Source of the DNA: Amphiscolops sp. MND2022
Lineage: Eukaryota
Direction: 5' to 3'
DNA: 64,000 nucleotides
Assembly: GCA_964187785.1 (NCBI GenBank)
Contig: OZ076410.1
Coordinates: forward strand, 3,782,001 to 3,846,000
In this document: positions 24,753 to 62,243 of the stretch, one piece after another
Numbering within the stretch: the first letter of the stretch is position 1
Layout: each line of letters begins with the position of its first letter
The notes under the pieces: generated by a model
What the model saw: only the letters and a program-made list of their open reading frames with translations
The model's database searches: none
What the model was told of the DNA's origin: nothing
Program-made: the position numbers and the translations under genes

Positions 24753-25745
24753 ACAACACCATGAGTAAGCCTAATAAAAGCAGTCAGGTTGTAAATTTTG
24801 ATATTAACGTTAGTTAATCATGCTTTTTATGAAAACCTACAAATCGGCATAAAATGTCACTGCGAAAAGTCGACAATAAATCTCGAAATGACTCCAGAGC
24901 ACAAGTTGCAAAACTCGAATTTGAAATACTTTTCTCGTTCAAAAGTGGTTTTTTTATATAAAGTGAAAGTGCACCAAAAATACACTATATGCAACAGAAT
25001 AGACTAGTGTATGTGGACGTGAAGTATTTTCTGCGAAATATTTGTTGAAAAACTGTTCCTGAGGTTTTGAATTGATGAGCGCTATCAATTTGTTGTGAAA
25101 GTTCATTTGTGAAAATGTTTCCGGTTATTTTCTTCGTGGAGGCTCATACTATGGAGGAGTTATGGAGTTGTGAACGGGAATACATTTTAGATGAAACGAA
25201 TTGTTCTTAGGAAGTCACTGATGAGAAGTAGAAACTGATGACTCCTGTCAACATGTAATGATGTTGGCCTAAGAGCGGACGGAATTGTTCCATTTTGTAG
25301 CCTGATATATTTTTTAGTAATTTTAGATTATTTCAGAAGCGTTTCATTTGCTTAGCAATAGTGCGGGAATTTGCATTTCGGCCTAGTAGAGTAGGAAACG
25401 TATCTCCCGCGTAACATCCTCGGAACTCGAAGTTGAGTCTTGCGTCGTTGTTGATCAGCTCTATTAGCTGCGTGTTGTCAACCATTGTATATATTGGAGG
25501 TTTTGATATCCTCTCGGTTGCGATCAATGAGAACGATAGATCTTCTCATGTAAAGAAAATGAGGCGAAGCGGCTTTGATGTGGCTTTGGAGAATTTCAAC
25601 TCGAGACCCAACCGTGCGCCAGTGCGCTCGGGAGGAATCGTGTTGTCCTCGATGTGTTAGTCAGCAGTTAATTTGAAAACCAGACAGAAATGATTACCAG
25701 AATTGTCGAGAATTGTGCCGTTACCACCATGTTTTGAACCAAGCG
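24750..25745. repeat. Copy A (blocks X+Y) of the triplicated ~2-kb segment; contains the empty target site of the 18.4-kb transposon
   Basis: 24750-25320 matches 43300-43848 and 63700-64000; 25321-25745 matches 62244-62645; the junction TAGTAATTTTAGATT (25315-25329) is uninterrupted here. Confidence 0.9.
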
Positions 25746-42180: not shown

Positions 42181-42256
42181 GATAATTAAATTGAGCGCTT
42201 GAATTTGGGACGCAGAAATGTGCCAGTAGTGTTCAAAAATCATCCTTGACGTTTTC

Positions 42257-43848: not shown

Positions 43849-44329
43849 CATTACGACGCATGACCCTACACTTTTTGTGCAGCTCAAAGTTGAGCCGCTT
43901 GAGCAGTGGAATCCTGGGCCAAGCTTTAAAACATACCAACCGCAAAGAGCGAAATTCGTCGCGTGGAATTCAGGGACTAATACCGCAGTGTATAATTTCT
44001 CGCGATTTCAGTTGACGGTAAGGCAAAATTGCGGGATCAGCTCGAAATCGTGGAATCCGCTGCTTACAGCGGATTCCGGGGCAGTGACAGCGGAATCCGG
44101 ACCAGTACCAGCGGAATCCGGGGCAGTGACAGCGGATTCCGAAGACTAAGGCAAGCAAGTATTAAAATGTTTGTTTTGTGAAGCGGAATCCACTGACAGC
44201 TCTGCGTGACATCTGTTTCAAGTTGTATGACAGCGGAATCCGCAGATGAGTGCGGGCTAGTATAAAGCTTGCTGTATACATTTATTATTGCGTTTAATAG
44301 GGCGTATACAGTTTCTGGGTTTAGGATAA

Positions 44330-45035
44330 ACAAGTCTCCTTGATGTATTATAGGCCTTCATGAATCACTGTTGTCTCTGGGATTAAGATTACTGTCTCCA
44401 TTATGTATTCTACTATGTTCTCTGGGATTAAGATTACTGAGACAAATTAAAATCTGTATCATATCTCTGTATTGCTCGTAATCTACTACTGTATTTTGTG
44501 TTTAATTGGGTGTGTTTTAATCTAGTTCTATGATAAGAAACAATTTCATTGAATTCAAACTTTACTCTAACTATTTTGTACTATCTTTTTGGTGAACAAT
44601 TCTTCATCTGCACTAAATTGGCAGGTATTAATAAACGAGCATCAATGAGACAATACAACTATGAATTAAAAGCCGACTAATTAATATACATTGTCTGAAA
44701 CCTCTACAGGGTGTATTCAGTTTCTGTGTTTAAGATAATTGTGTCTCCCTGATGTATTATTGGCCTGAATGTATTCTACTAATGCCTCTTGGATTAGGAT
44801 TACTGTTTCCATTATGTATTTATTATAGGCCTACATGCTATTAATACTAAATGTATGCTACTATTGTCTCTGGGATTAGGATTACTGTCTCCATAATGTA
44901 TAATAAGCCTACATGCTATTAATACTACATGTATACAACATGTGTCTCAGGGATTGAAATTACTGTCTCCATTATGTAATATAGGCCTACATGCTACTAA
45001 AACTACATCTACTCTACTATTTTCTCTGGGATTGA
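44330..45035. repeat. Degenerate ~65-bp minisatellite inside the transposon
   Basis: Recurrent TCTCTGGGATTAAGATTACTGTCTCCATTATGTA at ~44375, 44420, 44790, 44870, 44945, 45025. Confidence 0.75.
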
Positions 45036-45152
45036 GGTAGATGGTCTTGATTCTAAACTTGATTTAATATTTGATGCTAGCATACAATATATAATACACA
45101 CAATACAAACAGTACATACATGAATATATAATCTTCTCAAAGTAACCTAAAT

Positions 45153-47228
45153 TTAGAGTCCCTCATTGTGTTTAGAGTTGACATTGAGGATTTCCCGATA
45201 TTTTTCTTCGTTCCGGAAGCGTCCTTCACACGAGTTTATCTGAACCTTAATGGTTCGGAAGAGAAAGTCTTGGGATTCAGAGAATCGGATTGCTCTGATG
45301 AGGGTGTCCAGCGACTCTTCTCCGTCTCCTGGCAAGATGTCCCACCGCTCTCCAAAGAGTGAGTCCCCCGAGCGATGGCAACCGCGAAGTCCAGCTTCAA
45401 TATGAGCAGCAAACCTGACCTAAACATTAACATGAACTCAAAAAACTATCATCTTGTATTGTTTCATTGCTCTTAGTTAACAAATACTTAATGATTTCCT
45501 TAATTGACTAATTTTGTTTTCAAATTGAGTCCAGTTTCAATATGAGCAGCAAATCTGACCTAAACAATAACATGAACTCAAAAAATGATCATCTTGAATT
45601 GTTTCATTGCTCTTAGTTAACAATTACTTAATGATCTTCTTAATTGATCAATTTAATTTTGAAATACGTACATTATCCCGCGCTGAGTCTGCTTCGAATC
45701 CAACACATCGCCTGGTGAAAGTTGTAGCGGGGCACACATTAAAACTCGCAGAATGTTTTTTTCGACAAAGGCCTATGGCCCGCTTGATGGCAGAAAATAC
45801 AGCATATGCTCGATCAATGGGGCAAACCATGCTGTCTAGACTCACGGGGTCCAATGTTGTGTAATTTTCTTCCGGGAGCCTTACTGAAGACGCTGGAATT
45901 CTGCTAGTGAAGTCCGCATTTTCATCCCATGTTAAACTGACAAATGCTTTCTTCCTTGAAATAACGTACTCCAGCATTTCAATTGTGCATGTGTATCCTC
46001 CTCGGTCTAAAGCCTTGTTCCCTTTAACAAGAATGCCGTTTGTGCACGGAGCGCAAGTCAATGGCACGCTTGTCCTGGTTTCCCCGTCCGGAAGCACGGG
46101 GATTAAATTGATCATGTCAATTTCTAAGGGCTTCTCCTTCTGAGAGCGGGGCTTTTTTGGAGCCGGCGGACGAGGAATCGAGTCGCCATCGTCGTCATCG
46201 TCGTCTTCTGCTTTCGGGACGATGGCACTAACTTGCTGGACTGGGTTCCGTAGTACGCTGTACGAAACGTATCGAGGCATTTCGCCTTCTACAGAAACCA
46301 TCATTTGATGTAGGAACGGATCATTAAGCAGTATTCGTCCATGCTTCACAACGGCAACGTCTTCCGATTCGTCTAGGAAGTCAACCTAAATAAATGAAGG
46401 AATAAATCTAAATGCAGAGATCCTTCTGCAAAAATGCCTAATTGCAGAGTATACAAATCTTACATGGACTAAATCCTAATTAGCGTAGAAATAAAAATTA
46501 GACCTAATAAATAACACTTCTCCTAATTCCAGAGGTGTACAATCTTACATGGACTAAGTCCTAATAGGTATCCCGAACACTCTTCTCCTAATCCCAGAGA
46601 AATACAATCAAACATTGTACATGTCACAATACGATGCATAACCCAACACGTTTTGAAAAGAACGGAGTCGACTACTCACAGCATTTTGGACCTACAGGAC
46701 CTGGAATCCGCTGTTTTAAATGACGGATTTCAAAAACACACTTTATAACAAGTGCAGCGGAATCCCGGGACAAATCTCTTTACATTAAGTTTTTAGTGGG
46801 TTCCGGATGCAAATCCTATTATATTAGACAGCAGCGGATTCCGCAGTCTCTATTCCGATTTTAACCGCACTGATTTTCAAAAAGTAAAAACTATTTGGAC
46901 TGACACTCACCTCGTCGTGAACACAATGCTTGGGGTTGTACTCGAGTTGTACTACCCTTGGTGTTTGTCGTCTGTCCTCTCTGGAAAGGATGGAGGAATG
47001 TGTCTTTTCTATGACTTTTCGAACGTTCCATAACGACAAATCTCTACGCTTTTCTTCTGGTACCTCTATAGTTTCTGAGAGATAAATCGAAGTGTAGCCC
47101 ATCCACTTTATTTTAACAGACCAGTCGCTAACAATGCCAATAATTTTAGCCTTTGTCCACCTAGATACACTCTCGTCAATAACGTGAACAATTTCGTTTG
47201 GGCGAAAAATTTCCGCAGGCGTAGACAT
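45153..47228 (-). CDS. Transposon gene 1: 432-aa protein with an N-terminal Tudor/Agenet-like barrel; rest unknown
   Basis: Exons 47228-46911, 46385-45672 and 45419-45153, all phase 0 with GT-AG, no stops; N-terminus EIVHVIDESVSRWTKAKIIGIVSDWSVKIKWMGY resembles Royal-family domains (W..AKI....V.IKW.GY). Confidence 0.75.
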
Positions 47229-47527
47229 ACTGGGAATATTAATCAGGTAAGAGGTAAACAAGTACAGTAAGTTTTAAAATGTATATTGCGTACAATGACT
47301 GACTACCAGTAGAAATTTTAGTAAAAGCGAGGTGCTAAACTGACACCACCCTTTGGTTAGAGACTCATCAAGACCTTCTTTGAAAAGCGTCAATTCACTT
47401 TGAAAAAGCGTCCAATTATTTGAAAAAGCGTCAAATAACACTTTAACGTGGTAATTGAGTTGAGGTGCGAACGTCTGATGTGATATTAACCTCTCCATTC
47501 TTATTTTAATTTTCATCTTCATCTCCA

Positions 47528-50500
47528 ATGGCAGGATCAAGTTACATACAAAGTTTATGGGATGAACACCTGTTGATTGTCGAATGCAATAGGCAGTTTA
47601 TCAACAGCGACATTCTAGAAAAGATATATCTTGCGGAAATAAATTCCAAGAACAGGTATCGTAATATGCTTACAGCCGTCAAACAAATTGTTACTGGTAC
47701 TTCGCTGGATCGAGATCCAGAAGCTTCGGTCAGAAGAGTCAAAACCAAAAAAGGAGGACGTGAAGCAGTCTACGTAGCTGCGAAAATAATGAAACTTATC
47801 ATAGTTTGCGGATTGAGAGATCACACATGGAACCAAGCCAGGAAAGATTTTGTCTCCTTCTTTTTCTCCCGAGAGCTCATTCCTGATGTTGACCCTTACA
47901 ATGTATCTGTCCCAAACAACGTCCCCATCAATGCGTCTATACCAAACAACGTCCCCATCAATGCGTCTGTACCAAACAACGTCCCCATCAATGGTTCTGT
48001 ACCAAACAACGTTCCCATCAATGCGTCTGTACCAAACAAGGTCCCCTTCAAAGCATCTGTCCCAAACGTCGTCCCCTTCAATGCTCCTGCCACTAACAAC
48101 TTGTGTATGCCTGTTTCATCTGGCACATCCATCAAACGGACTAACCTAATTAAGAGCAGGCCGAAACTCTCATTACGTAAAAAGGCCCAGGATGTGTGTA
48201 GAGCCGGGGAAAAATTGAACTTGAAGAGCTTTTGGAGACAAGTGATTTGGTGCATCAGGTACAAAGGGATTAGTATTCGTGGGTTGACTGAAGCAGCTCA
48301 CAGAGAAGCTGAACAAAGGAAGAGGCGTAATGGAGCCTCCAAGAAGCAAATGAACATCATAGGGGGCCTTATTACTGGACTGTTCAAGGACAGGGGTAGC
48401 TGTTCTGACTTTCGCGACGCTTTGGCAATTCATACAAAGACTGGTAACGTAAATGACGTAATCAACCTGATCCGTTCTCGATTGTCAGTTCCTGGCCTGG
48501 GCTTTAACTTGGTACCCTCAATTCGTACGGTTGTCACGTCCAATGCCAAATTCACCCAACATTTCATTAAACTCTGCAATCCGGAAAGAACCTTTAGTGG
48601 ATTCCGAGTGGATGTTGTTCGATGCGTCAAACTTGCTGCATACGTAATCCTTGAAACTACAAACATCTCGGGATTGAAGGTTGATATCTGGGGAGTTGGT
48701 GCCGCAATTGGAGGAACAGAAGTAACAAGACTGGCGTTTAGATTGATCTGTGAGGAAGTAAGTGTGCAATCATCTGACAGTGTCTTCTGTTTTGCCGCGT
48801 ACCGAGGCAAGGACAGCAGGTATGCTTTGGAGCAAAATGTGGGATATGAAAAAGTTGGGGACCAAACATCAGGGTGGCTGTTCAAGCAGACTGTTGCATT
48901 GAGAGAACTCGGCGTCAAATTGACTTATAGCGAAGACAATCCGTTCTTACTTAGGTGCGCAGCATTTATTATTGCTTCAATTTTTTGCTGAACGAAAGAA
49001 AGAAAGTCTTTTAGTCTTCTGCAACCTGATTCATGAATTCTGGATTTAAGATAGTTTTTCGTCATTGTAATGTTTTTGCTGTAATTTGAGGAGAGTTTAA
49101 CTTTTTTCTTACATTTAGGCTAATTCTTGGAATCTCAAACGATCGCAGCTCAGATTTCCCGTCACTCATGCCACTGTTTCTGGGAACGGACGACACGTTT
49201 CTACCTACAACAGTCGATCCAGAATCTGGATACCGAAGCAAAGTTACAGTTCCATTTCGCACTGATCTACCTTCAACGTCTCTCGTAAGCTACGACGACA
49301 TACGATGCGTTTGCCCTGATGTAACGCACATGATAACCAGATGTGTGGAAAATGACTTGAAAAAAATTGCGCAGAAGCTTGTTGATGACAAGCATCCTAA
49401 AGAGAAAGGGTCACTCGCGCAATTGGAAGAAAATCTGACCAAACGAGATGTGAAGAAACCGCACTTCCAGTTCGATACGACTACCAAATCTGGACAGAAA
49501 GTGAAGACTGTCGGAGCGGTATCACTTTCTGGGTCGGCAGCACTTACAGCAATTGCCAACAAAGAAGAGCTTTCTGATATGATTCCAGACATGACAAACT
49601 TATTCGAAGGCGTATGGAAAGACGAAGAAGTATTAATGGGAAGCAACGACAATGAAAACTCCGTCAAGGTGTTGAAAGAGATGTACCCGTCACTGTTTTC
49701 GAAACCAAATCCCACGAAGAAGAATGAAAACCATGGGTACATTTCTATTTCAGATGCAGCTGAGCTCTTGAGGGAAAGCCTTAACATGTGCACTATTCTT
49801 TTGCGCAGTTCACGGACCGTTCTCGACATTGCAAGTTTCGGCAAGTGGGCAGAGACGTATTACCAAGTCTCCATGTTACTTTTTGGCAAAGATAAAGGAC
49901 TTACGCCTTACAAGCTGAAGATGCTACTTTATCCACAACTAATTGAGAGCGGACATATTATAACTCCTTGGAATCATATGTGCGAGGGTTTGGAGAAGTC
50001 TAACCATAATGCAAACAAAGCATTCCAGAGCAAGACGATGAGAGGCGGAGGAAAGCAGTCAACCCAGGACCCCCTTTTTTTCGAGCTTCAATTTTCCTTG
50101 CTGAAGCTGTTCAGGAAACAATCTATTAAAGCAAAACAAGTTTCAATTAACGATTTGTTATCAAAAGCCCTAGGAGTTGTCGGCATAGCCAATCAAGCTG
50201 ACGAAGAATCGAAGACTTACAATGATATTTGCCTGCAGCCTGTTTCCTGTGCTTCGATTGCTGTCGGTGAGACACGGGACAGGAAATACCGCTTTTTGGG
50301 ATTATACTTTTTTGTAGTGGGTCACTTTGGTTCTATGAAAAATGAAGATATCCAAAATGCGATAACCGATATGAGTGGAACAGTTTGCACCAAGGCAAGT
50401 GCTGAAACATTGTTACTTTCGCACTCGACTTGTCCAAACTGCTTTGTCGTTATGATAGACGAGAAAGAGTTTGAGGAAGTCGACGGGTGTTCTCAAAGAT

Positions 50501-50880
50501 CCATCGAACGATAAAGAGTTGACGGACGTGCCGAAGAAGTCTGTATCAGAAAATACGGCAACTGCGACTGGACTTCTATGTCGCAAATTTGCTGGCGGAG
50601 ATTGGAAATTCCTTCAGTTTTCGTTTGTACTGGATTCATTAAAATCAGATCGCATCCTGGATCCGAAAAAAGTACGAAATGTTACCAGGACCAAACGTCA
50701 AGAAGTTGCAAGTTAAAGATGTGCGCCCTTTGTTAGCAAGACAGTGCAGTGAACAAGGTCAGAAAGTTTCCGCTATCTCAGCCCTGAAGAGCCACAGAAA
50801 AAAAAGAAAGATCAAAGAGGAAAAAGCAGCGGATAATGAGGAAACTATCATTTTGAACCTAATTTCGTTTGTTTCTTTCT
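47528..50880 (+). CDS. Transposon gene 2: DDE transposase, RAG1/Transib/Chapaev-like, with C-terminal BRCT-like domain; disrupted
   Basis: Exon 47528-48954, intron, exon from 49119 (in-frame join ...DNPFLLR/LILGIS...). Motifs: KVDIWG[V]GA (first Asp position is GTT at 48695-48697), TYSEDNPFL, CPDVTH, LTPYKLKML..MCEGLEKSNH (cf. RAG1 TNYFHK..SEGNESGN). BRCT-like FLGLYFFVVGHF..ITDMSGTV and WKFLQFSFVLDSLKSDRILDPKK. Frameshifts near 50490 and 50670. Confidence 0.8.
47913..48080 (+). repeat. 30-bp coding tandem repeat (VPNNVPINAS x ~5.5) in the transposase N-terminal region
   Basis: GTACCAAACAACGTCCCCATCAATGCGTCT repeated in frame. Confidence 0.9.
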
Positions 50881-50984
50881 GATAGTTGTTCTTTGTATTT
50901 TGTTCTGTTTAATTGAGTTGTTTACGTACAAACTATTGTAGTACAAAAATTAAAAATTATTGAAGGTAAAATCATGGTTTTCAT

Positions 50985-51560
50985 TTATTGTCTCCCAAAA
51001 ACGCAGTGCGGAATTTAGGGTCAAACGGTAAAACATGTACAGCGGAATCAGCAGACAAATGGTAATACATTGCGAGTTTATTTTCCTGTACCATACCTCA
51101 AGAAAATGTCCAAATCTGCTTAGTAGCATAAAACAGTGGATTCGGCGTTTATCGCGAGTGTTGCGCCCATAACAGCGGAACCCGCTGTTTTGTATTCCAG
51201 ATTGATGCCTTCCAAAATCGCAGTGCGGAATTTAGGGGCCAATGTTAATACATGTACAGCGGAATCCACAGGCAAATGTTAATACATTGCAATTTCGGTT
51301 TCCTGTACCATACCTCAAGAAAATGTCCAAATCTGCTTAGTAGCATAAAACAGTGGATTCCGCGTTTACCGCGAGTGTTGCGTCTCATAACAGCGGAATC
51401 CCCTTTTTTATGTCCCAAAATAATGTCTTCCAAAACGCAGTGCGGAATTTAGGGACGAATGTTAATACATGTACAGCGGAACCCGCAGACAAATGCTAAT
51501 ACATTGCGACTTCAGTTTCCTGTACCATACCTCAAGAAAATATCCATATCTGCTCAGCAG
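50985..51560 (+). repeat. 217-bp tandem array (~2.6 units), left arm of an inverted pair
   Basis: CATGTACAGCGGAA at 51034, 51251 and 51468 (217-bp spacing). Confidence 0.9.
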
Positions 51561-52201
51561 TTTGAAATTCATAAATTCATAACAAAATCATCAATTCTCA
51601 ATCTAATTCCCAATCTAATCTATTTTCTCAAAATAACAAAAATAAAAGAAGTTTTGCTTGTATTTGCAGTTGATCTTTAATCCCATTTCTGGTTGGGAAA
51701 AGCTGTTGGTTAATTTCTTGGATGGGAAGTACCGGGGGACCCTGAAGGCACTGGGATCTCACAGCTTGAAGAAAGCCAGCTGGACATCTCTTCGAATGTA
51801 ACTCCATACTAAAAACAATATCCCTCCGTAAGAAAAATAAATACATTCCGTTTCACCAAAAACCAAAAGGCAATATACAAAAACAAAAAGCAAAAAACGG
51901 TTTTCGTCTAGTCGAACAAAGTCACAAAGTACTATGAAAATTTGCATGAAAATTACATACTTTCTGACAAACGGTGTCAATGGAACATTGAACAGTAGGG
52001 CAACTCGTCTTCTGTACAATCATGGCAGCGTTCAACAGCTGTGCCCTCTCAAGTTTGTCCACGCATGCAGAAGAACTAAAACATACCAACCTCTGTAATT
52101 AGGAATATGATCATTTGATCGTTAATACCAACAGACTATATACAAGAATTCATGCATCATGCAAAAGTAATAATAGTAATATAATAATGTGAAATAATGA
52201 T

Positions 52202-54657
52202 CTACCTCATCAAATTCGCGATGTGTGTAAACAACAGTCGGGGGCAATGGGGGTAACACTCGTTGTAGGGGTCACACCGGTCCCTCTCATTGGAGAACTC
52301 TTCTGCTGCTTTCTTCACATGCAGGCGGTGGATAAAGTTGACTCCCAGCGCGACGGACAAGCCGAAAGTCTCCACCGCGTGGATCATCTTTGCTGAAAGA
52401 ATCAGGGCCTGTCCCTCGAAGAGAGTGACTTTTGTGCACCCGCCCATGTCAAGCTCTTCATGGGAGCCAAAAAAGAGGTCCTTTCTGAACAATCATAAAA
52501 CAGTAATAATTTTTTCCCGGTTCTTAGTTATACATGCAAAACACAGAAAAAAGTATTGTGTAGTGTAAGTATAAACAATATTACTTGCCTGGGGAGATGT
52601 TTGAATGCCTTGAACAAGTCCACGTTTCTGGCAGTGGGCCTCACAACATGGAAAACTTTAACTCCTGTAACAATAGTTGGTCAGTCACCAAACACGACTA
52701 TTTTATAACACTATTTTTATATATTGTACTAAAAACTGGTACAAACCTTTGGCAAGATAATAGAAGACGCTGGTTGATGAAAAGTCCTGATGGAACCGCG
52801 TGATCGCGCCATATTGTGAAATGAGCAAATAGTTGGATTCACGCTCTGGACGCATTTCTGCAGGGGTCTCGTCCCAGCTCATGTGCCCAACGGAAACATG
52901 GTCTAGGAAGCTGGGCTTCTTGAATGAGGCTCCTGGGCTTTTGTTTGCCTCGGCGTCGATCACGTTGTAGAACTTGGGGGGGTCACTCTCCATCATCTCG
53001 GTAACTCTGTTACCTGGCACAACTTTTTTCCCTTCCTAAATGATAAACCAGGTCAGGTTAAGGTATCCTTAAAATCAATAAAGAAAACAAAACTGATGAT
53101 TGTATCTCCACCAGCAGTTATAATCACTGTGCTCACCTCGAACTTTGTCGTTAAATAACGAAGTGTCACGGGGTTGGCACTATATTCTTGCATCATCTGT
53201 TGGACAGACGACATTCGGCTCATCTTCTCCCTTGTTAGCTTCGTCTTGAAACCGGGGATGGCCGAACCGTCATGGATGACGAAGACATATTCCCCGTCCA
53301 AAAAAGCCGGGTCTGAGAGCAGTTCCTGCGTGATTTCGTCCGCTGCAATGTCACGCCGCATCGAGGTAGCATTTGGAATCTAAATTCAACACAAATCACT
53401 TTACTCAGAAGACAAAATCTCATTCTTCAATCCAGAGACTTCAGTCTAGAGAAGAGATCTTATTCTTGAATCCAGAGATTTAGATATAGAGATATCTTAT
53501 TCTTGAATCCAGAGACTCAAATCTATTTAGATCTAGAGTCTGAAGAAGAGATCCCGTTCTTAAATCCTGAGAAGAGATCCCATTCTTAAATCCAGAGAAG
53601 TTCTTACTTGACTCATAAGGTCACGTAGCTCCCAGATGCTACCGAACGATTTCATGTGGTGCGTATCCGTGATGTTCAACCTTCGCAAGGTTAGCGTGCA
53701 TCTGCTCAGCTTTGGCATCTGCAATGGCCTTCGCGATACACATTCGCCGTCGTTTCTGTTCCCACATTTCCTTAAGCAATATCACTATTAGGTGTTTTAA
53801 TCCCACCAAATCATTATGATTTTAAAACTAGAAATCCATAGAAATTACACATGCTGAAAAATAATACTTGAAACATGAAACAAACATTAATAAAAATACA
53901 TACACTTTTGGGCTCTTCCACTTGAATGTGATTGACTTTTGCAACGTTGAAGGCTTCCAAAACTACAATGGAAGCGATTGCCTGTTCTTCTTTCGTCTCC
54001 TCAAGAAAGACAGGTGACTCTTCCGCAGTAGCTTCTTCCGCCTCTGTTGCAAAGTGAAGGGTGGAAGAGGAGGAAACAACACCAGCATGCTCAGGCTCCA
54101 CAGGACTGCTGCTTTCCGGAACCTGTTCAAGGATAAATCATTTTAACTCAAAAATGTAAATCAAAAACTAGGACTTGATTCTTATTCATGCACAAAAACA
54201 ACGTTTATAATGGATGATTTTAATATGTTTGGATGAATTACCTCCCACCACGGTGTTGATGTCGATGTCGCACTGGCTTCTCGTTTAATCGCCTTGGATG
54301 GTGGCGGTTGCTCGAAGAACTTCCTCGTCCTCCCTTCTGCCGAGAAGGCCTTCTTGCACCCCGGGTATGTGTCTCTTACGAGAACAAAGTTTTCTCGTGT
54401 GGGCTCGAGTAATTTTGCTCGATCTTCCGCTGTCAGGGCATTTCGAGCATTCCAGCATCGGAGTGTCAGCACATGATCAGCAGTCTGCTGCACGTCCTTG
54501 AAAAAGGAGCCATCTGTAGGCGAGCCACAAAACATGCACTTCATTCTTGTGCCGCGCGTCTGCTCTCTCTTACCGCAACTCTGATTGATGTGCCGGGTCA
54601 GATTACCCTTATTTGAGAGGGTCAGTTGGCACGTGGGGCATTGAAATTGGGGCATAT
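52202..54657 (-). CDS. Transposon gene 3: C2H2 zinc finger + JmjC histone demethylase (KDM2/KDM7-like); one probable frameshift
   Basis: Exons approx. 54657-54241, 54122-~53910, ~53785-53609, then 53379-53137, 53035-52747, 52664-52589 (GC donor), 52484-52202. FQCPTCQLTLSNKGNLTRHINQSC; JmjC YLLISQYGAITRFHQDFSSTSVFYYLAKGVKVFHVVRPT..CTKVTLFEGQALILSAKMIHAVETFGLSVALGVNFIH retains the T, H-x-D, K and H ligands. Confidence 0.87.
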
Positions 54658-55329
54658 TTTCAGAGAGAACCTTCAAACATAAAAATTTTTAGGCCTAATA
54701 CGATTTCCTACATTCATGGTCATAATTGCAGAGGTTGGAAAATAGCATTTGATCTTAGGTTTCAAGAGATTACAGATACTTTTCCTAATTCCAGAGGTAA
54801 GCATCAGTCTTACGTGTTGCGCGTACTGATACTTTTCCTACTTCCCGAGATATGCATCAGTCGTACATGCAATCGTGACAATGCACAAGTTAGTACGGCA
54901 TATGTTGCAATCGCAAAAGTGTAACGGAAACTGTTACTGAAGCAGCGTTACGTGATTTTTACTTTAATCGATTTGATCTCACTGCACCAACTGCGCCCCG
55001 CCTTAGCATACTGTTATCTCGTTAGATGAAAATTTTAAACTCTAAATGACATTTCTCTGGGTTTCGGAATGAGCGACTGCTCCCAAGTACCCTGTGACGA
55101 CTCCCAAGCCACCTTGGAGGAACCGATCACAAAAGCTTCAGTAGACGATTCTAGGCACTTTTATATGCGCTTATAAGACAATTACAGACATATAGACACT
55201 GATAGACTCTTATAGATTCTACTTGACTTCTAGTTAATTAGGATTTCAACCTGGGAAATTTGAGATTACTGGTCCCAAAATGCATTTTCAAGAGAGGGTT
55301 TGAAAAAACTAAAATTCTTGAACACAGTT

Positions 55330-56126
55330 TCATGATCCTGAGCAGATTTGAATATTTTCTTGAGGTATGGTACAGGAAATTGAAATCGCAATGTATTAAC
55401 AATTGCCTGTGGATTCCGCTGTACATGTATTACCATTGGCCCCTAAATTCCGCACTGCTATTTTGGAAGGCATCAATCTGGAATACAAAACAGCGGGTTC
55501 CGCTGTTATGAGGCGCAACACTCTCGCTAACCACGGAATCCACTGTTTTATGCTACTAAGCATATTGAATATTTTCTTGAGGTATGGTACAGGAAACCGA
55601 AATTGCAATGTATTAACATTTGCCTGTGGATTCCGCTGTACATGTATTACCATTAGCCCCTAAATTCCGCACTGCTATTTTGGAAGGCATCAATCTGGAA
55701 TACAAAACAGCGGGTTCCGCTGTTATGAGGCGCAACACTCTCGCTAACCACGGAATCCACTGTTTTATGCTACTAAGCATATTCAATAATTTCTTGAGGT
55801 ATGGTACAGGAAATTGAAATCGCAATGTATTAACATTTGCCTGTGGATTCCGCTGTACATGTATTACCATTGGCCCCTAAATTCCGCACTGCTATTTTGG
55901 AAGGCATCAATCTGGAATACAAAACAGCGGGTTCCGCTGTTATGAGGCGCAACACTCTCGCTAACCACGGAATCCACTGTTTTATGCTACTAAGAATATT
56001 GAATATTTTCTTGAGGTATGGTACAGGAAACCGAAATTGCAATGTATTAACATTTGCCTGTGGATTCCGCTGTACATGTATTAACATTTGTCCTTAATTT
56101 CCGCACTGGTTCTTTGGGAGGCAATA
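55330..56126 (-). repeat. 217-bp tandem array (~3.6 units), inverted relative to 50985-51560
   Basis: Repeated ORF starts at 55396/55613/55830 show the 217-bp period; the sequence is the reverse complement of the 51-kb units. Confidence 0.9.
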
Positions 56127-56693
56127 ATATGGAGTATGAAACAGTTTGTTGTTATAAGGAAAAAATCGTTTGGTGCTTCATGTTGTTCTAGATTGTGTAA
56201 CATAGATTGTATATTATTATTATAGATAGGGTTTTATCATGCCGTAAGTGTCAGCCGGCCAATCCGAGATACATGTGTTTTACACACTCATCTTTCAAGT
56301 TCTGATGAAAACTTGGGCATTCTTTCGGGCCAATGAACGAACAATGAGAACGAGTGCTGATGATTCAAGTCAAATGGTAGATGAGGTGTGGTTTTAACAC
56401 TTCCACATGATTAAGAACCGCATCAGGCGCTGCCAAAAATTATAATATAAATAATTATAAAATTATACTCATTATAATTATATAACTACAATTATTTCCA
56501 TTGGCAGCGTCTGATGAGGCTTTTATTAATTTGTCAAAGTGGAAGTGTTAAATTACTATGATGGCAATCATCAGTTAAGTAATTAGCAGTTTCAGTAGAG
56601 TAATATCACAATACTATTCATTATATAATTTTGATCTACTAGGAATCAGTCAATTTGAATTGTACATCGTTCTATTTGTCGAAGGAACCTACA

Positions 56694-59600
56694 ATGTCTC
56701 TGCAAACGCATCAAATTCAATCACAACCATTAGAAGATCTTGGAAATTTGACAGAACTTCAATCGCCTCAACTAGTTACCTCAACGCCAGTGCAACCCGA
56801 GACGTTTACACTTACACTGCCTCATCCTCCAGTTCCAACATTAACCCCTCTCTCACGATCGCATGAATATTTGACAACCCCCACCGGAAAGAGCCCGGCT
56901 GCAGTTCGCCAATACTCACACCCGTCATATTTTGAATGGAATCAATCGCAATGGCTCAACATGGATGGAATATCGCACGAAATTCCCCCGACCATGTTTG
57001 GTGAAATGCTTCCACCACCTGAACATTCGCCGGACCTTTTTCTTCCTCCGCTTGAAGCTTCGTCGACTGAGCAACTTGAAGAAAGTCGTAAAAGAGCAGC
57101 TAGCTCTGCAACAAATGATATTCCGGAGGTCAGTTTTTGACTTTCAATTGAAAATTTCAAACTGAAGCGGGAGATTTTAACCTTTTAGAACCACATAGAG
57201 CACGAAAAGAGTTTCATTCATCATAGCAGCGGAATCCGCTGTCTCATGTTTCATATCATTGACTTACAAAAGAGCATTGCGGAATTTAGGGGCTAAGGTT
57301 AACACATGTACAGCGGGATCGGCAGACAAATCCTAATACATTATGATTTTAATTTCCTGCACCATACTCCAGGAAAATTTCCAGCTACCGCCTTGGCTGA
57401 GCCGTGACGGATTTTTTTCAGCTTTCACTTTCAAGAAAAGACGGAACGTGTCACACACCTCGCAGTGTTTGCACGATGGTATAAAATAAGCGAAAATTTC
57501 GAGGAGAAACTTCATATTTCCTAGATTTTAAAATTCATTTTGCGTTTGAATTTGAAAACCAATTTGCATTTGAACTTAATGAGTTTTATTTGACTTTCAT
57601 TATAATATTTGAAGTTGTTTTTGAAATTTGTACTCAAATTATTTAGAAAATATCGAAGACTTCTATCAGGGCTACTTGTGGCGAGACGACTGAAGAAGAA
57701 CTTGAGATAGCCATCAGGGACATTGTAGAGCAGTACAAGAAAACGGAAGCGCTGACACAAAAGCAAAGAACAATGCTCTTTCGTGCTTTGGCGTGTTTCC
57801 TGTCAAAGCATGCAGCACCACCAATGATGGACAAATGTATCACAGAGCTGACAGTGCATGCTGTTACACAGGCCATCGTTTCCTTGCAAGAGGACACAGA
57901 CGATGAAACAGCAGTTGATGCAGGAATCACAATCTATGTTGAGCCTGCTGAATTTTCTCCGATAAGATCGTCGCACACTGTTCCCCGATGGCTAGTGGAC
58001 GGTTTGAAAACATACTACCTGGAGGCAAGACCGCACTTCCTGCCAAAAGAAGGTCTTGATGTTTTCACCAGGGTTTTCGTAGATGACACAAGAACAGTGA
58101 GAACTCACCGCTTTTTCGTCAATTCCAATGGCTCAACCCATTTCAAAGTGCGCCAACTATGCGACCAATTCAAAGACACGGTAAAAACTTAAATTTCAAC
58201 CCAGAAACACCTAAATTGCTTCAAATGTTTCCAGGGCCACCACGCGTTTTACATTTATTTCAAATTCATGGAAAATTTAATTGCGAGACCGATTTGATTT
58301 ATTGAATCTACGCCACGAATTTTTTCGCAGTTAATCATGCATGTTTTCAATGTTTTTACCGAAGTTTGCGTCTTTTAGCTTCAGCAGCACATCGATAACC
58401 CTCAAGAGACCACCCTAGAGAGACATGTTGCGAGTTTTCTTCCGTTTCGAAGCGATCCAGGTTTCACCATTGGCAAACAGAAGCAAGTAATCAATCAGGT
58501 TTTGTTCTTTTTCGTTTGATAATAAAATATTGATTTTCCTTTCTAAACCTTTGTTTTCAACAAAGGAATGGAAATTCTTTTTTAGGTAAAAAGTCAGACA
58601 GAAAATTATACCCACAAAGAAGTTTCCAAGGCGGTGAAGCACAGACTTGACCAATTACGGTACCATCGGCAAACAATTAGAGCGCAACATTGGATCAAGA
58701 ACAATGGATGGTTACTGTCAAACTGCAGTGATTTGGAGCAGCGCCTGAACACCTTTTATGCGAGGATGGGCTGGGACAAATGCGACATCAAGAAAACGAT
58801 GACTATAGCTATAAAACAGGTTAGGTTGGGTTACGTCACGTTCGAGTACTTTAGATTGCAGTGCATTAGATTACGATAAAATTTCCCAATGGCACAAATC
58901 GAAAATCAAATGGGGCAAAAAAATCATTTGTTTTGGTACCATAGGGTAAGCAGCTAAAGGAGTGTTTGGCCTGTCTAGAGCTGCCCCATGCTAAGTGATC
59001 CATAGTTATTAGAAAAAATCATTGAGTTTGGATGCTTTGTGTTTTGAATAGATGAAGAGCACATCATCACGGACCAGTATATGCAGGCCGCAGTTCAATT
59101 CCATTATCTGCAAAGGAGACAGGTTGTCATACGAAAACCAGATAAGTTTGAAAGACCGAATTGACAACCAAAAGTGGGAGTGGATTTGCGATGCCCATTT
59201 CACCAAATTTGGTCGAGGCATTGTCAGTCTAGGAAAACTGGAGAAAGACACAATAATTGTAGACTACCACGGGAAAGTCATTACCGGCCAGAAGTTCGAG
59301 GAGTACGTGCAGCAACCCGACGTTACGAGCGAATTTGTAATGGAAGTAGCAGGTCCACCAAAGCGACTTATAGATGCCAGTTCCGAGATTTGTGTGCATC
59401 ATCCAACGAATTTATGTAATAATAATATTAATGATGTTTAATCTTTAGAGTTGTAAGAATAACAATCTCTACAATTTCTTTATGTTGTTTAGGTATGGGT
59501 CGTTTAGCCAACCACGCGACCCAGAGAAGAAACAACGCTGATAACAGAGAAGCCAACATGAAGTCTGCTAGCATCCTCTTGGACCATACAGATCCCCCTC

Positions 59601-59701
59601 TGAGAGTCGCAGTAATGAAGGCTAGACGACAGATAGAACCCTTCGAGCAACTACGTTTCGATTACGGCGATAAGACAGCCCAAGAACTTTTTACCGAATA
59701 A
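56694..59701 (+). CDS. Transposon gene 4: 631-aa protein with a C-terminal PR-Set7/KMT5A-like SET domain; apparently intact
   Basis: Exons 56694-57128, 57647-58180, 58379-58498, 58586-58819, 59052-59415, 59493-59701 give 1896 nt in frame with GT-AG boundaries; SET motifs KFGRGIVS..IIVDYHG..IDAS..MGRLANH..ARRQIEPFEQLRFDYGD. Confidence 0.9.
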
Positions 59702-60593
59702 CTCTGCTTGTAGAACTGCCATTTTATACATTCTATTTTGGATCTTTCAGTAACCTAGTCAAGTGTTCGTTCAGCTAAAACCTACTCGTTTTAATTTCTG
59801 TTTTGAGTTAAATATAGAGATACAAATAATTATCCTAAATACAGAGATTCCCTTAAATGAGCCCGGCCCTGTTCTGAATACAGAGATATATATCGTATAC
59901 GGAGACTAAATCTTGTCCCATGGTATTTTAAATCTTATCCTTAATACATAGGCAAATATATATCTTAATTACAGAGATTCCCCTAAATGAGCCCGGTCTA
60001 GTTATAAATGCAGATACCGTATATTTCGGCGAATGAGCCCCCCTCCGTATACTATACGGAGGGCTTTGCAAGCCCCCTCCCCAATTTTGAAAAAGAAGTT
60101 TTTGATATATGGTATGTTCGTCATATATCAAGAAAAATAAAAGAAAATAAAAGTTCAATAAGTGTAAATTGAATGAATTTTCTTGGTATAAATTCAATTT
60201 TCAATTCTACTAAAATCGGAGTTTCATTTCATTACTAAAATCTGTCATTTCAAGCTCTGAAATTTCTTCAAAAAGAAAAAATAAAAAAGGGGTTTATTTG
60301 CCGGAATATACGGTATATTTATATATTATATATTATTTATATTTATATATTTTTATCTTATACATTGATTCCCTCAAATAATCCTGACAAATATGTTGAA
60401 GAGTATAAATGTTACTTACCTTGATTTAGAATCAAAACTTTTTGAAGACTAAATAGGAAGAATATGTAAGAGGTAAGAAGACTTCGAGAATTCTTCAGCT
60501 AAGACTTGCTTATCAATTGTGAATCTTCAAATGAGAGGTATTCAGTAGAAGCAGGCTGGTCAACTTGTTTTAGCAGTAACTAATCACACACTG

Positions 60594-60875
60594 ACAAAAC
60601 GGTTTGTTTATTTTACTCTGTAATCGAACAATTCCAGTCACGTGACCAATGCATCGTTCTCTCAAACACAGAGAAGAGTGAGATTGGCGCCAGCCCGCTT
60701 ATGACGGTCGGCGCGTTGCTATAGTTACCGACACAAAACGGTTTGTTTATGTTACTCTGTAATCGAACAATTTCAGTCACGTGACCAATGCATCGTTCTC
60801 TCAAACACAGAGAAGAGTGAGATTGGCGCTAGCTCGTTTATGACGGTCGGCGCGTTGCTATAGTTACCGACACAC
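60594..60875. repeat. ~142-bp tandem duplication in the right part of the transposon
   Basis: Two near-identical units AAAACGGTTTGTTTA...CAGTCACGTGACCAATGCATCG...GACGGTCGGCGCGTTGCTATAGTTACCGACACA. Confidence 0.9.
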
Positions 60876-62243
60876 TAATTTAGCACAAATTATGAAGTTA
60901 ATATTGATGACTGTGATTAATTCTCTCTGAAACTCTAAAATCTTCAAATACAATTAACACTCATGATTATCAAAACGAATTAGCTGACCGATAAATTTAA
61001 TTAATACCACAACAAGGAATAATTCCTTTTTTCAACATTTTTTTAAAACCTTTACTTAATTTATGACAATCAATTTTAGATATAGTGTCAAGTATTTCCA
61101 CTGTCCTCATTATTGAACAATGTTATTTTCAGACAATGTTTGTTTTATTCGTCAAACTGGTAAAAAAAAGTCTTGAGCTGTCAAAACTTCTGACCTAATG
61201 ACTTCTGAAGTTAATATTGATGACATTCTTACAAATCAATACAAACAGTGCATTCTCTTAAACACAGAAGAGTGGTAAATTGTTTTACAAAGTTCGGACA
61301 AAATGCAATTTTGACAACTGAATTTTGACTAAAATTGGCTCTTTTCTTCGTTCATAATATAAGCATACAGAATCTTAATTACAACACATTTGACACAATC
61401 TAATTGTTACAAAAATTTAGCACAAATGATGAAGTAATGATAACATTCTTACAAATCAATACTATAATTAATATAACTAAATATTAATTTACAAGTTCTT
61501 CAAATCACTAGATCAATTGACATATGCTGAACCAGGTTCGCATAGTTTTGAATGCGTTTGATATGCAGATTGAACAATTTGACTAAAATTGATTCAACTA
61601 AAAATTATTAAGTTTGAAATACCTAATTAATTAAAACATTTAAATAGGCCAAATCCAAATTATGAGTGTCATTCATTGAAGTGTCCTTGTTGTGTGCTGA
61701 TGGGTGATGAACCAGAAGGAATACAAATGGTCCTAAACATAAATGTTGTAAGTGCTGATTAAACAAGGTACGGTACATATTTCGCGATATCTTGTAGTGG
61801 AATCCACTGTTAAAAACAGCAGCTGTCAAAAACTGCGGAATTCGCTTGCACAACAGCGGAATCCACTGGTGCTGTTGCGGAATCCGCTGTCGCAGCAGTG
61901 GATTCCACTGTTTTTTCCTCTACATTACGAAAGCTTGTCCTTGGAATCCGCTGTTTTTACGCTGTGTAATATTATGTGACCCCGGATTCCGGTACAGCGA
62001 CTGCGGAATCCACTGCTGTTTAATATAATAATATATGCCTCTGAATTCCACCAAAAATTCAAGGTAAAGAGATTTGTCCCCGGAATCCAGAAAAAATTGC
62101 AAGCGGAATCCGCTGCACATGTTATAAAGTGTGTCTTTGAAATCCGTCATTTTAAACAGCGGATTCCAGGTCTGATAGGTGCTACCTGCGGTTAGCAGTC
62201 AATTCCGCAGTTTTCAAAAAGTGTAGGGATATGCGTCGTAATG

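Follow-up and report, generated by a model that had tools for sequence, protein, structure and literature searches.

SETMAR (Metnase) ties a SET methyltransferase to a DNA transposase and to double-strand-break repair. SET genes are also found in the HarbingerS and MuDR DNA transposons of Phytophthora, TET/JBP genes in KDZ, Plavaka and other fungal elements, and VANC in VANDAL (PMC12730594). CMCT/RAG1 constitutes a broad structural group (PMC12730594) which takes in the Chapaev/CMC transposases and, by its predicted fold, also the transposase reported here. Chapaev elements are recognized by a TSD of 3-4 bp and by ends that invariably read 5'-CAC...GTG-3'; the motifs C(2)C, LH and H(4)H complete their hallmarks (PMC4079192). 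Here we describe a transposon in which a transposase with a predicted RAG1-like core travels with genes for a predicted writer, a predicted eraser and a probable reader of histone methylation. No published description of the element was found in the literature; Repbase and Dfam lay outside this search. All coordinates are positions within the 64,000-nt window, i.e. the whole stretch of DNA that was analysed and not the element.

Boundaries and copies of the element

Positions 43849-62243 form a discrete insertion of 18,395 bp in the window (Table 1). Its termini read CATTACG...CGTAATG, and the 29-bp TIRs named in a preliminary description indeed pair as inverted repeats. The empty paralogous site, which was said to fix both boundaries, was aligned with the flanks. 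The left flank (43272-43848) was 90% identical to 24752-25322, the right flank (62244-62647) 91% identical to 25321-25735. Therefore, the two flanks meet in one continuous paralogous stretch, exactly at the claimed boundaries. A search for copies elsewhere retrieved independent loci at which these ends again enclose these genes. Copy 2, from another assembly, was ~97% identical and collinear across the full length; it has GA as TSD and its own empty site. Copy 3 was collinear from the left end up to the contig stop, with a different flank. Beyond the window, the left boundary was repeated in two copies whose flanks are unrelated (L001:4457 and L002:4442), and the right boundary at L003:13252, where the TSD is GA and the empty site is the adjacent 60-bp tandem unit. 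The transposase and Tudor-like ORFs each had 75-76 cluster members. The word depth of the element was very high in the read contigs, which are short, DNA-like and without exon joints. The insertion belongs to a multi-copy DNA transposon of the cut-and-paste type, which makes 2-bp TSDs, and its mobility is demonstrated by ends, TSDs, empty sites and independent copies.

Intron 1 of the Tudor-like gene contains a third end-like sequence, an addition to the preliminary description. It shares ~83% identity with the right end (61990-62244) read as reverse complement, and copies 2 and 3 have it too. Divergence of this intron was lower than that at synonymous sites (0.048 vs 0.157).

Table 1. Features of the element and its insertion site (positions in the window).
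Feature	Position	Strand	Basis or remark
Paralogous empty site	24752..25735	+	other copy of the ~2-kb repeat unit hosting the insertion
Left TSD copy (TT, 2 bp)	43847..43848	.	filled vs empty paralogous site 25315-25329
Left TIR, 29 bp (CATTACGACGCATGACCCTACACTTTTTG)	43849..43877	+	27/29 vs reverse complement of right end
Left subterminal cluster, six CGGAATCC	44071..44241	.	exact-site scan
Tudor/Agenet-like three-barrel gene (predicted)	45156..47228	-	pieces conserved in other families
Tudor-like exons	~47228-46953, ~46385-45651, ~45390-45156	-	cross-family conservation of all three
Third end-like sequence	46627..46857	+	left-end orientation
Transposase, predicted RAG1 fold and C-terminal BRCT	47528..~50855	+	splice junction fitted to family consensus
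Transposase exon 1	47528-48954	+	family-consensus fit
Transposase intron, GT-AG	48955-49118	+	family-consensus fit
Transposase exon 2	start 49119	+	family-consensus fit
217-bp repeat array with CGGAATCC	50989..51600	+	downstream of transposase
C2H2-zinc-finger/JmjC gene (predicted KDM2/KDM7-like)	52202..54655	-	Pfam and PDB phmmer
ZnF-JmjC stop codon	52202-52204	-
JmjC exons	53035-52747, 52664-52589 (or 52585), 52484 (or 52480)-52205	-	fit to L005 homologue
ZnF exon	54185-54655	-	Pfam zf-C2H2
217-bp repeat array, seven CGGAATCC	55323..56144	-	inverted vs 50989-51600; divergent JmjC/SET intergenic region
SET gene (predicted PR-Set7/KMT5A-like)	56694..59701	+	Pfam/PDB matches via L004 homologue
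Upstream SET-gene exons, provisional	56694-57137, 57647-58189, possibly 58586-58876	+
Diverged 217-bp repeat unit	57208..57436	+	inside 5' part of SET gene
SET-domain exons	59052-59415, 59493-59698; stop 59699-59701	+	77-bp GT-AG intron
Right subterminal cluster, six CGGAATCC	61857..62111	.	exact-site scan
Right TIR, 29 bp	62215..62243	-	recurs as end at L003:13252
Right TSD copy (TT, 2 bp)	62244..62245	.	filled/empty site comparison

The transposase

The spliced transposase ORF comprises 940 aa without stop. Sequence similarity to Transib/RAG1 was undetectable by phmmer, by the family profile or in Pfam, and of the canonical motifs that were sought, C(2)C and H(3-4)H, neither is present. The predicted model of a relative, P0012, matched RAG1 506-972 (VIA Z 14.5), HzTransib (Z 12.7) and BbRAGL of amphioxus (Z 12.3); the next unrelated folds, Hermes and ISCth4, reached ~6. 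According to this model the catalytic core is a RAG1/Transib fold. The last-E region 'EGLEKSNHNANKAF' resembles 'EGNESGNKLF' of RAG1. Throughout the family the transposase is fused to a C-terminal BRCT domain, whose match at the sequence level is weak (best 1.6e-6, 3/22 members).

The transposase of the window copy is damaged, a correction to the preliminary description. D390V (48695-48697) alters the invariant DIWGDG motif in the window copy alone. The BRCT tail has two +1 frameshifts (~50470-50472 and ~50666-50671), with a premature stop at 50512-50514 as the outcome. None of the read contigs has the extra T at 50470. Because of D390V and the two frameshifts the window copy is probably unable to move by itself. 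Since its ends and the catalytic motifs of the cargo are intact, relatives could mobilise it in trans.

The cargo genes

As proposed earlier, the four genes are arranged as two divergent pairs, Tudor-like (-)/transposase (+) and ZnF-JmjC (-)/SET (+). The window SET exon by itself matched Pfam SET with an E-value of 0.02. The L004 homologue, with which the exon junction (...HHPTNL followed by CMGRLANH...) agrees, gave 3e-10 for Pfam SET and 4e-4 for SETD8/KMT5A in the PDB. The motifs NH and FDYGD are present, the latter as 'RFDYGD' vs 'LYDYGD' in SET8. Concerning a possible host orthologue, the relatives were only unnamed element-type ORFs with no named host KMT5A among them, in a search which sees only proteins sharing short exact words with the query. 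With SETD8/KMT5A as its nearest match, the gene is predicted to encode a PR-Set7-like lysine methyltransferase, in line with the earlier call.

In the ZnF-JmjC gene Pfam zf-C2H2 matched the ZnF exon with an E-value of 3.7e-4, a score that falls short of the curated cutoff. The separate JmjC exons gave KDM2A (1.5e-4) and PHF8 (3.8e-3) in a PDB phmmer search; a fit to the L005 homologue, which has no introns, placed introns of 82 and 104 bp. The iron ligands HxD...H are present, plus the K in 'VKVFH'. A KDM2/KDM7-like demethylase is predicted, and the earlier assignment is retained with KDM2A and PHF8/KDM7 as nearest proteins. E-values of SET and JmjC against solved structures are only 1e-3 to 1e-4, and at such identities substrate specificity is unreadable.

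The Tudor-like gene is spliced as described previously; its exon set was incomplete and the third exon (45156-~45390) has been added. A profile of this protein family retrieved 136 clusters at 50% identity; neither Pfam nor the PDB yielded a sequence match for the protein. The AlphaFold model of a relative, P0142 (pLDDT 79.7), had as top fold matches the Agenet repeats of AGDP3, the triple Tudor of SETDB1, the tandem Tudor of UHRF1 and the Tudor of TDRD3. The Z-scores were middling (5-7.6), as these are small SH3-like barrels, and KOW domains and R67 DHFR score alike. The Tudor-like call is based on predicted folds, and the protein of three Tudor/Agenet-like barrels is a probable reader.

Conservation of the cargo among families

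Five other families, several of them in one assembly, have transposases which are only 35-48% identical to that of the window. All three cargo genes were present in L004 and L005, and two each in L006, L007 and L008. The cargo kinds are retained at 26-47% identity, and gene order and strand are shuffled. Copies devoid of cargo had been considered as refuting evidence; the copies elsewhere carry the same genes, and the five families two or three cargo genes each. The divergence grouping was the same for transposase, Tudor-like and SET proteins, i.e. the window, L004 and L005 are closer and L006-L008 farther; for JmjC the columns are few and the grouping is noisy. Between the window and copy 3 dN/dS was 0.24 for the Tudor-like gene, 0.21 for the transposase and 0.16 for ZnF-JmjC (p <= 2e-7). 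The between-subfamily range was 0.16-0.24, cargo and transposase alike, so purifying selection on the cargo is as strong as on the transposase. Because the cargo recurs in five diverged families with such dN/dS values, we consider it an inherent component of the lineage that is maintained by selection. As judged from sequence, the SET, JmjC and Tudor-like genes are core equipment and not chance passengers.

DNA transposons often capture genes, and the cargo might consist of inert passengers captured once or even represent a host gene cluster between two repeats. Single copies with broken cargo, such as copy 2 with a 116-bp deletion of a JmjC exon, would agree with this. We regard it as very improbable in view of a selection equal to that on the transposase, of the same cargo kinds accompanying such distant transposases, of intact catalytic motifs, of exact ends, TSDs and empty sites at independent loci, and of the outcome of the short-exact-word search, in which no named host KMT5A appeared.

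The Tudor-like gene adjoins the transposase in five of the six families, whereas the positions of SET and JmjC vary. RAG1 is served by the PHD finger of RAG2 and chromoviruses by chromodomains. By analogy, the Tudor-like protein might be a chromatin-reading accessory which targets integration or licenses cleavage at a methyl mark, with SET and JmjC tuning this mark. Its modelled fold matches H3K9me-reading tandem Tudor and Agenet modules, and the two insertions whose empty site can be recognised lie in repeats (the ~2-kb unit and the 60-bp tandem array). However, these are just two or three insertion sites, repeats dominate the region anyway, and the adjacency is broken in L005. We consider this alternative unlikely.

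Motif arrays and a proposed function

A family-specific motif, CAGCGGAATCCNCTG with the core CGGAATCC, is found at both ends and in the intergenic arrays. All 26 exact CGGAATCC sites of the window are inside the element and none outside; 1.4 were expected by chance. The sites are kept in copies 2 and 3 and are nearly missing from the other families. In CACTA-type elements subterminal repeats are ordinary transposase-binding sites, too.

Because the transposase has long travelled with genes for a writer, an eraser and a probable reader, we infer a chromatin editing to the benefit of the element. Tentatively, we propose that the module acts on the histone methylation of the element itself via recruitment by the motif arrays. 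The CAGCGGAATCCNCTG arrays at the ends and in intergenic, presumably promoter, regions would recruit an element-encoded DNA binder, for which the demethylase, through its zinc finger, and the transposase are candidates. Recruitment would be followed by the removal of repressive marks and the deposition of the element's own at places that have to be accessible for transcription and for recognition of the ends. Such a system would do at the level of histones what the sequence-specific anti-silencing by VANC does in plant VANDAL elements. A PR-Set7-type (H4K20) writer, however, is not an obvious activating enzyme, which counts against anti-silencing.

A role in break repair suits the BRCT tail and an H4K20-type writer about as well. 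The module would then serve the transposition reaction and not transcription, steering end joining and making the excision of 18 kb survivable. RAG1-type cleavage results in double-strand breaks at donor and target sites. PR-Set7 and H4K20me bring 53BP1 to breaks, and its tandem Tudor reads H4K20me2. H4K20me1 is removed by PHF8, and KDM2A opposes the H3K36me2 deposited by SETMAR at breaks. The element might accordingly carry a break kit of H4K20-type writer, Tudor mark readers, KDM2/PHF8-type resetting eraser and a phosphopeptide-binding BRCT on the transposase. The family-wide BRCT fusion, the proximity of SET to SETD8/KMT5A and of JmjC to KDM2A and PHF8, and the co-inheritance of all four genes suit such a kit, as does the Phe at the Phe/Tyr switch ('RFDYGD') which predicts di-methylation. 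Yet the intergenic motif arrays are left unexplained, the BRCT match in sequence is weak, and the cargo substrates are deduced from distant similarity only. To us, this role appears somewhat less likely than the recruitment proposed above.

Comparison with known systems

As in Transib, RAG1 and ProtoRAG, the predicted core superposes on RAG1, HzTransib and BbRAGL, far above Hermes or ISCth4. In contrast to these systems, the element is devoid of the zinc motifs C(2)C and H(3-4)H, its ends read CATTACG and not a heptamer-like CAC, and its TSD is 2 bp instead of the 5 bp of Transib and ProtoRAG. It has no RAG2-like gene, but three chromatin genes in addition, and its transposase bears a BRCT tail. 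The subterminal short-motif arrays are reminiscent of the CACTA subterminal repeats in the Chapaev/CMC group, and the short TSD matches the 2 bp of Mirage. Of the initial designation 'RAG1/Chapaev-like' the first part is upheld by the predicted fold (Z 14.5); 'Chapaev-like' is unsupported because of the 2-bp TSD, the CAT...ATG ends and the missing C(2)C and H(3-4)H motifs.

With the transposons that carry epigenetic enzymes the element shares a gene acting on epigenetic marks beside the transposase and, as in VANC targets, family-specific short motifs arrayed in non-coding regions. It differs in the transposase superfamily and the BRCT fusion, in having a predicted writer, eraser and reader-like gene and not a single enzyme, in a gene set conserved down to ~35% transposase identity, and in its predicted target, histone lysine methylation instead of DNA methylation. 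SETMAR is a single domesticated primate host fusion gene with a mariner transposase and is not mobile, whereas here SET is a separate gene in a mobile multi-copy element with a transposase of predicted RAG1 fold.

Boundaries and further copies of the element

The element had been delimited by terminal inverted repeats (TIRs) and by a paralogous site lacking it, and both boundaries proved exact. The left end, starting at 43849 (CATTACGACGCATGACCCTACACTTTTTG), matched the reverse complement of the end at 62243 in 27 of 29 positions, i.e. the TIRs are 29 bp long. In a self-comparison of the window, the left flank (43272-43848) was 90% identical to 24752-25322 and the right flank (62244-62647) was 91% identical to 25321-25735. 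Because both flanks match one uninterrupted paralogous stretch, the empty site joins them at the insertion point. Two additional T's at the filled site give a target-site duplication (TSD) of 2 bp (TT). The insertion target is a repeat unit, roughly 2 kb long, which occurs at least three times in the window with about 90-95% identity. A satellite array lies between the empty site and the element. Its units belong to two or more subtypes (75% vs 95-100% identity), which suggests a higher-order structure.

Further copies were reached from the second long ORF of the transposase. It had 76 relatives, and the contigs of the two closest were retrieved. Copy 2 (loci L001 and L003, a single 173-kb contig) was about 97% identical to the window element and collinear with it from the left end at L001:4457 through the right end at L003:13252. 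Its flanks were unlike those of the window (...GGTCGAGA|element|GACCAAAAGG...) and the adjoining 60-bp tandem unit reads GGTCGAGACCAAAAGG. Copy 2 thus adds another empty site and another unambiguous TSD, GA, again of 2 bp. Copy 3 (locus L002) was 86-93% identical, started with the same base, had a third flank and was collinear up to the end of the contig. The transposase ORF cluster had 75 member sequences and the Tudor-like ORF cluster 76, and the depth of element words was very high in the read contigs of four runs. The preliminary description had raised the possibilities that other copies lack the non-transposase genes (cargo), that the TIRs flank unrelated content elsewhere or that the cargo genes are single-copy host orthologues. 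All were answered in the negative; we therefore regard this as a real multi-copy element which carries its cargo to independent loci with unrelated flanks. With TIRs, a TSD, an element-free site and the same ends and content at independent loci it has the features of a class II cut-and-paste transposon. A 563-aa ORF (L002:609-2300) some 2 kb off the left end of copy 3 weakly matched DUF1759, a family known from retrotransposon gag-like proteins; it is probably an unrelated neighbouring element.

Positions of features in the window
Feature	Position	Remarks
Empty site	24752-25735	paralogous repeat unit without the element
Partial copy of satellite array	25986-26612	
Satellite array	30283-40472	period about 516 bp, about 20 units
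2-kb repeat unit, left of element	42251-43848	recurs at 62643-64000
Element	43849-62243	
Tandem duplication, 138 bp	45388-45665	two units; Tudor-like intron 2/exon 2 boundary; common to other copies
Internal end-like sequence	46627-46857	left-end orientation; Tudor-like intron 1; in all three copies
Transposase exon 1	47528-48954	
Tandem repeat, 30 bp	47899-48084	transposase exon 1; encodes repeated peptide VPNNVPINAS
CGGAATCC site in transposase exon 1	48599	
Altered codon in DIWGDG	48695-48697	GAT to GTT
Transposase exon 2	from 49119	
Frames matching relative P0001	49168-50478, 50462-50671, 50667-50849	three consecutive frames
217-bp repeat array	50989-51600	downstream of transposase
JmjC cassette	51797-55926	
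217-bp repeat array	55323-56144	divergent JmjC/SET intergenic region, inverted orientation
217-bp repeat array	57208-57436	5' part of SET gene
SET-domain exons	59052-59415, 59493-59698	
Tandem duplication, 139 bp	60594-60874	two units; AT-rich right arm; common to other copies
2-kb repeat unit, right of element	62244-64000	

The transposase is RAG1-like in its predicted fold

The two transposase exons are separated by a GT-AG intron, and the junction ...DNPFLLR|LILGISND... agrees with intronless relatives. The spliced ORF encodes 940 amino acids. The number of VPNNVPINAS repeats encoded in exon 1 apparently varies between copies.

Sequence similarity to RAG1 was absent in Pfam and PDB phmmer searches with both long ORFs and with a 22-sequence profile; neither phmmer nor the profile matched a HzTransib or RAG1 PDB chain at E ≤ 10. 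Sequence methods being silent, the link to RAG1 comes solely from the predicted fold. The AlphaFold model used was that of a relative, P0012, which is 46% identical to the window transposase (core pLDDT 85-95). Its best 30 Foldseek matches were all RAG1 or Transib. VIA-align gave Z-values of 14.5 for RAG1 506-972, 12.7 for HzTransib and 12.3 for amphioxus BbRAGL over 315-345 residues; the next-best folds, ISCth4 and Hermes, scored Z ~6. Thus, the transposase core is predicted to have a RAG1/Transib-like fold, consisting of an RNase-H-like core, a RAG1-type insertion and C-terminal domains. Weak RAG1 leads from an ESM Atlas feature search (scores ≤ 0.79) were set aside as evidence.

At the C-terminus, evidence for a BRCT domain was weak but consistent. 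Pfam BRCT_2 matched 3 of 22 relatives at 1.6e-6 and the window protein at 0.0083, a profile search returned the PARP1 BRCT at E 0.032, and the C-terminus of the P0012 model aligned with the BRCT domains of RFC1, BARD1 and BRCA1 at Z 4.2-4.7.

Transib elements have a 5-bp TSD and RSS-like CAC termini. In contrast, the element reported here has a 2-bp TSD and no detectable sequence similarity to the Transib transposase in the PDB. Chapaev elements are characterized by a 3-4-bp TSD, invariable 5'-CAC...GTG-3' termini and C(2)C, LH and H(4)H motifs (PMC4079192). The designation Chapaev-like in the preliminary description was abandoned because the TSD is 2 bp at two independent insertions, the termini are CATTACG...CGTAATG and the Chapaev motifs are missing. 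The sequence signature of the CMCT clade, which comprises EnSpm, Mirage, Chapaev, Transib and RAG1, is C(2)C and H(3-4)H (PMC12730594). When the spliced window protein and eight relatives were scanned by regex, neither C..C nor H(3-4)H proved to be conserved in the relevant segment. Since the predicted fold is that of RAG1, yet the hallmarks of Chapaev and of the CMCT clade are missing, we call the transposase RAG1-like in fold only and do not assign it to a superfamily.

The window copy carries lesions

The family-invariant DIWGDG is located on strand beta-1 of the RNase-H fold. The window transposase has DIWGVG; the aspartate is kept in copies 2 and 3 and in 15 of 16 relatives. From its position on strand beta-1 we infer that the altered residue would be the catalytic aspartate. 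Further, relative P0001 aligned with the window in three consecutive frames because two homopolymers of the window are one base longer, with TTT instead of TT at about 50470 and A6 instead of A5 at about 50666. Both +1 frameshifts are in the BRCT tail, and copies 2 and 3 have neither. No read contig contained the additional T at 50470; hence it is either private to the window copy or an assembly error. For 47000-52999 the four runs yielded short DNA-like contigs with no joints. With a changed aspartate and a broken frame in the BRCT tail, the window probably does not encode the DDE transposase of an active copy. The other copies were also damaged: in copy 2, 116 bp of a JmjC exon are gone and exon 1 of the transposase contains a stop; copy 3 has several stops. 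Intact 561-aa ORFs of transposase exon 2 were found on several contigs.

A putative writer, eraser and reader

The proposed resemblance of the SET gene to PR-Set7/KMT5A was borne out. The two SET-domain exons join as ...HHPTNL|CMGRLANH.... The window fragment alone matched Pfam SET at E 0.02, and the single-ORF homologue from L004, a locus of another family, did so at 3e-10 (above cutoff), with SETD8/KMT5A as best PDB matches (4e-4). The window exons contain the NH and (F/Y)DY motifs in 'GRLANHA' and 'RFDYGD'. RFDYGD stands where SET8 has LYDYGD, which presumably places a Phe at the Phe/Tyr switch described in SET8 studies. By sequence, the product is thus a putative PR-Set7/KMT5A-like lysine methyltransferase. 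Relatives of SET, sought by matching short exact words, were all unnamed ORFs from metagenomes or assemblies; no named host KMT5A was among them.

The JmjC gene likewise fell into the KDM2/KDM7 group as anticipated. Separate exons had KDM2A (1.5e-4) and PHF8/KDM7 (3.8e-3) as best PDB matches. The iron-ligand stretches (HxD...H) aligned as well, 'FHQDF' with KDM2A 'FHVDF' and 'MIHAVET' with PHF8 'WIHAVLT'. Pfam JmjC was under the cutoff on the scanned fragments; PF02373 was precomputed on the L007 homologue and faint on that of L006. Two short introns, with proposed junctions 52747/52664 and 52589/52484, were fitted to the intronless L005 homologue. The first exon encodes a C2H2 finger, which is conserved in L005. 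We consider the product a putative 2-oxoglutarate/Fe(II) demethylase of the KDM2/KDM7 group.

The Tudor-like gene has three conserved exons. A profile search yielded 136 clusters at 50% identity; the domain alignment had no direct Pfam or PDB sequence match. The AlphaFold model of a relative, P0142 (pLDDT 79.7), has three beta-barrels. Its best Foldseek matches were AGDP3 Agenet repeats, the SETDB1 triple Tudor, the UHRF1 tandem Tudor and FMRP, and further ADCP1/AGDP1 bound to H3K9me2 and MBT repeats. Domain 1 superimposed on the TDRD3 Tudor with an rmsd of 1.0-1.6 Å (Z 5.3), and domain 3 resembled BAH, PWWP and Tudor barrels (Z 6-7.6). Such Z-values are intermediate, with KOW domains and R67 DHFR in a similar range. 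A weak profile match, P0256, carries MSL3-chromo, MBT, Tudor and Agenet repeats. The ESM Atlas feature search with this ORF gave noise and was set aside as evidence. Of the claim that the protein is a Royal-family methyl-lysine reader, the Tudor/Agenet-like fold is supported by the model, and methyl-lysine reading is only plausible. Such a reader might direct integration to marked chromatin, which we consider improbable.

BRCT domains, H4K20-type writers, Tudor domains and PHF8/KDM2-type erasers are components of 53BP1/NHEJ signalling. A role of the cargo in break repair would fit the BRCT tail of the transposase, an H4K20-type writer, the Tudor barrels and a PHF8/KDM2-type eraser alike; we regard it as possible, if somewhat unlikely.

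The cargo is an integral part of the lineage

Five loci of other families were compared: L004, L006 and L007 belong to the assembly of copies 2 and 3, L005 to a different one and L008 to GCA_029980085.1. Their transposases are 35-48% identical to that of the window. Cargo homologues were present at each locus, with differences in order or orientation.

Gene order and strand in the window element and at five loci of other families
Locus	Genes
Window	Tud- Tnp+ JmjC- SET+
L004	SET- Tud+ Tnp+ JmjC-
L005	Tud- SET+ Tnp+ ZnF-JmjC+
L006	Tud- Tnp+ JmjC-
L007	Tud- Tnp+ JmjC- SET+
L008	Tud- Tnp+, JmjC pieces to either side
Tud, Tudor-like; Tnp, transposase.

Divergence of transposase, Tudor-like and SET genes grouped the loci alike, i.e. 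window, L004 and L005 were closer and L006-L008 farther; divergence of JmjC was noisy due to few columns. CATTACG-type ends were looked for at the five loci and none were found. Recent capture of host genes was considered and rejected because the cargo of different families in a single assembly is only 28-40% identical.

Comparing window and copy 3, dN/dS was 0.24 for the Tudor-like gene, 0.21 for the transposase and 0.16 for ZnF-JmjC (p ≤ 2e-7). For SET it was 0.34 between window and copy 2. That the cargo genes are inert passengers appears very improbable. These data demonstrated a mobile element with a selected set of histone-methylation genes.

A family-specific motif and inverted repeat arrays

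The near-palindrome CAGCGGAATCCNCTG has the octamer CGGAATCC as its core. Of this octamer the window contains 26 sites (1.4 expected), all of them within the element: the two subterminal regions have six each, the internal end-like sequence has two, transposase exon 1 has one and the three arrays of a 217-bp repeat together have eleven. The sites are kept in copies 2 and 3 and almost missing from the other families. Each of the diverged families (L004-L007) has an abundant short motif of its own, for example ATGTTAAGCATCGG-type words in L005 (about 130-144 occurrences), AGTCGATGCAC in L006 (about 65) and AAACGCGTT in L007 (about 68). Inverted intergenic repeat arrays are also present in L004 and L005.

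By analogy with VANC of the VANDAL elements (PMC12730594) we tentatively propose that the cargo serves self-directed editing of the element's own chromatin, a role which it may quite conceivably have. The SET and JmjC enzymes would be recruited to the family-specific motif arrays at element ends and promoters.

Inverted 217-bp arrays flank the JmjC cassette, and the strand of the cassette varies among families. The window cassette is 86% identical to L002:12718-16884, against 91-93% for the rest of the element in copy 3, which suggests exchange or inversion of the cassette between subfamilies. Recombination at the 217-bp arrays could underlie both gene shuffling and mosaicism. Non-coding parts of the element are less diverged than synonymous sites (Tudor-like intron 1, which includes the internal end-like sequence, 0.048 vs dS 0.157); this suggests cis-acting constraint or gene conversion.

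The internal end-like sequence resembles the right subterminal region (83% over about 230 nt) more closely than the true left end does. It may be a regulatory site, a relic or the alternative left end of a 15.6-kb sub-element. That it marks a nested or composite insertion was rejected as the main explanation since the exons on either side form one Tudor-like gene kept in other families, and since the feature is present in three of three copies.

Relation to known systems

Transposons are commonly viewed as targets of chromatin silencing. In this lineage, a RAG1-fold transposase and a BRCT domain have long co-evolved with a histone lysine methylation toolkit of writer, eraser and reader-like protein. 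V(D)J recombination descends from the RAG1-fold transposase family and is licensed through the PHD of RAG2, a histone-mark reader. Conceivably, although this seems rather doubtful, the lineage has swapped a RAG2-type reader for a circuit which writes, erases and reads one mark (H4K20-type) and for the BRCT domain of the transposase. The element would then set, read and reset break-signalling chromatin at its own ends during cut-and-paste. If true, coupling of RAG-family recombination to the reading of histone marks would be an old, recurrent strategy of transposons and not a vertebrate innovation. The family is a natural system in which to study the manipulation of host chromatin or break repair by a mobile element. 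It could also be a source of compact SET/JmjC/reader modules which are paired by nature and come with family-specific DNA motifs.

In the literature, with Repbase and Dfam outside the search, we found no account of a RAG1-fold transposase with SET, JmjC and Tudor-like genes; the publications found described neither a Chapaev or Transib element with SET or BRCT nor a KMT5A with a transposase. Fusions of chromatin domains and transposon domains have been surveyed (bioRxiv 10.1101/2021.11.30.470311). SET genes are carried by HarbingerS and MuDR elements of Phytophthora, TET/JBP genes by fungal elements and VANC by VANDAL (PMC12730594). Each of these elements has a single epigenetic gene, whereas the element reported here combines a writer, an eraser, a reader-like protein and a BRCT domain, which would make it the most complete element-encoded chromatin toolkit described to date.
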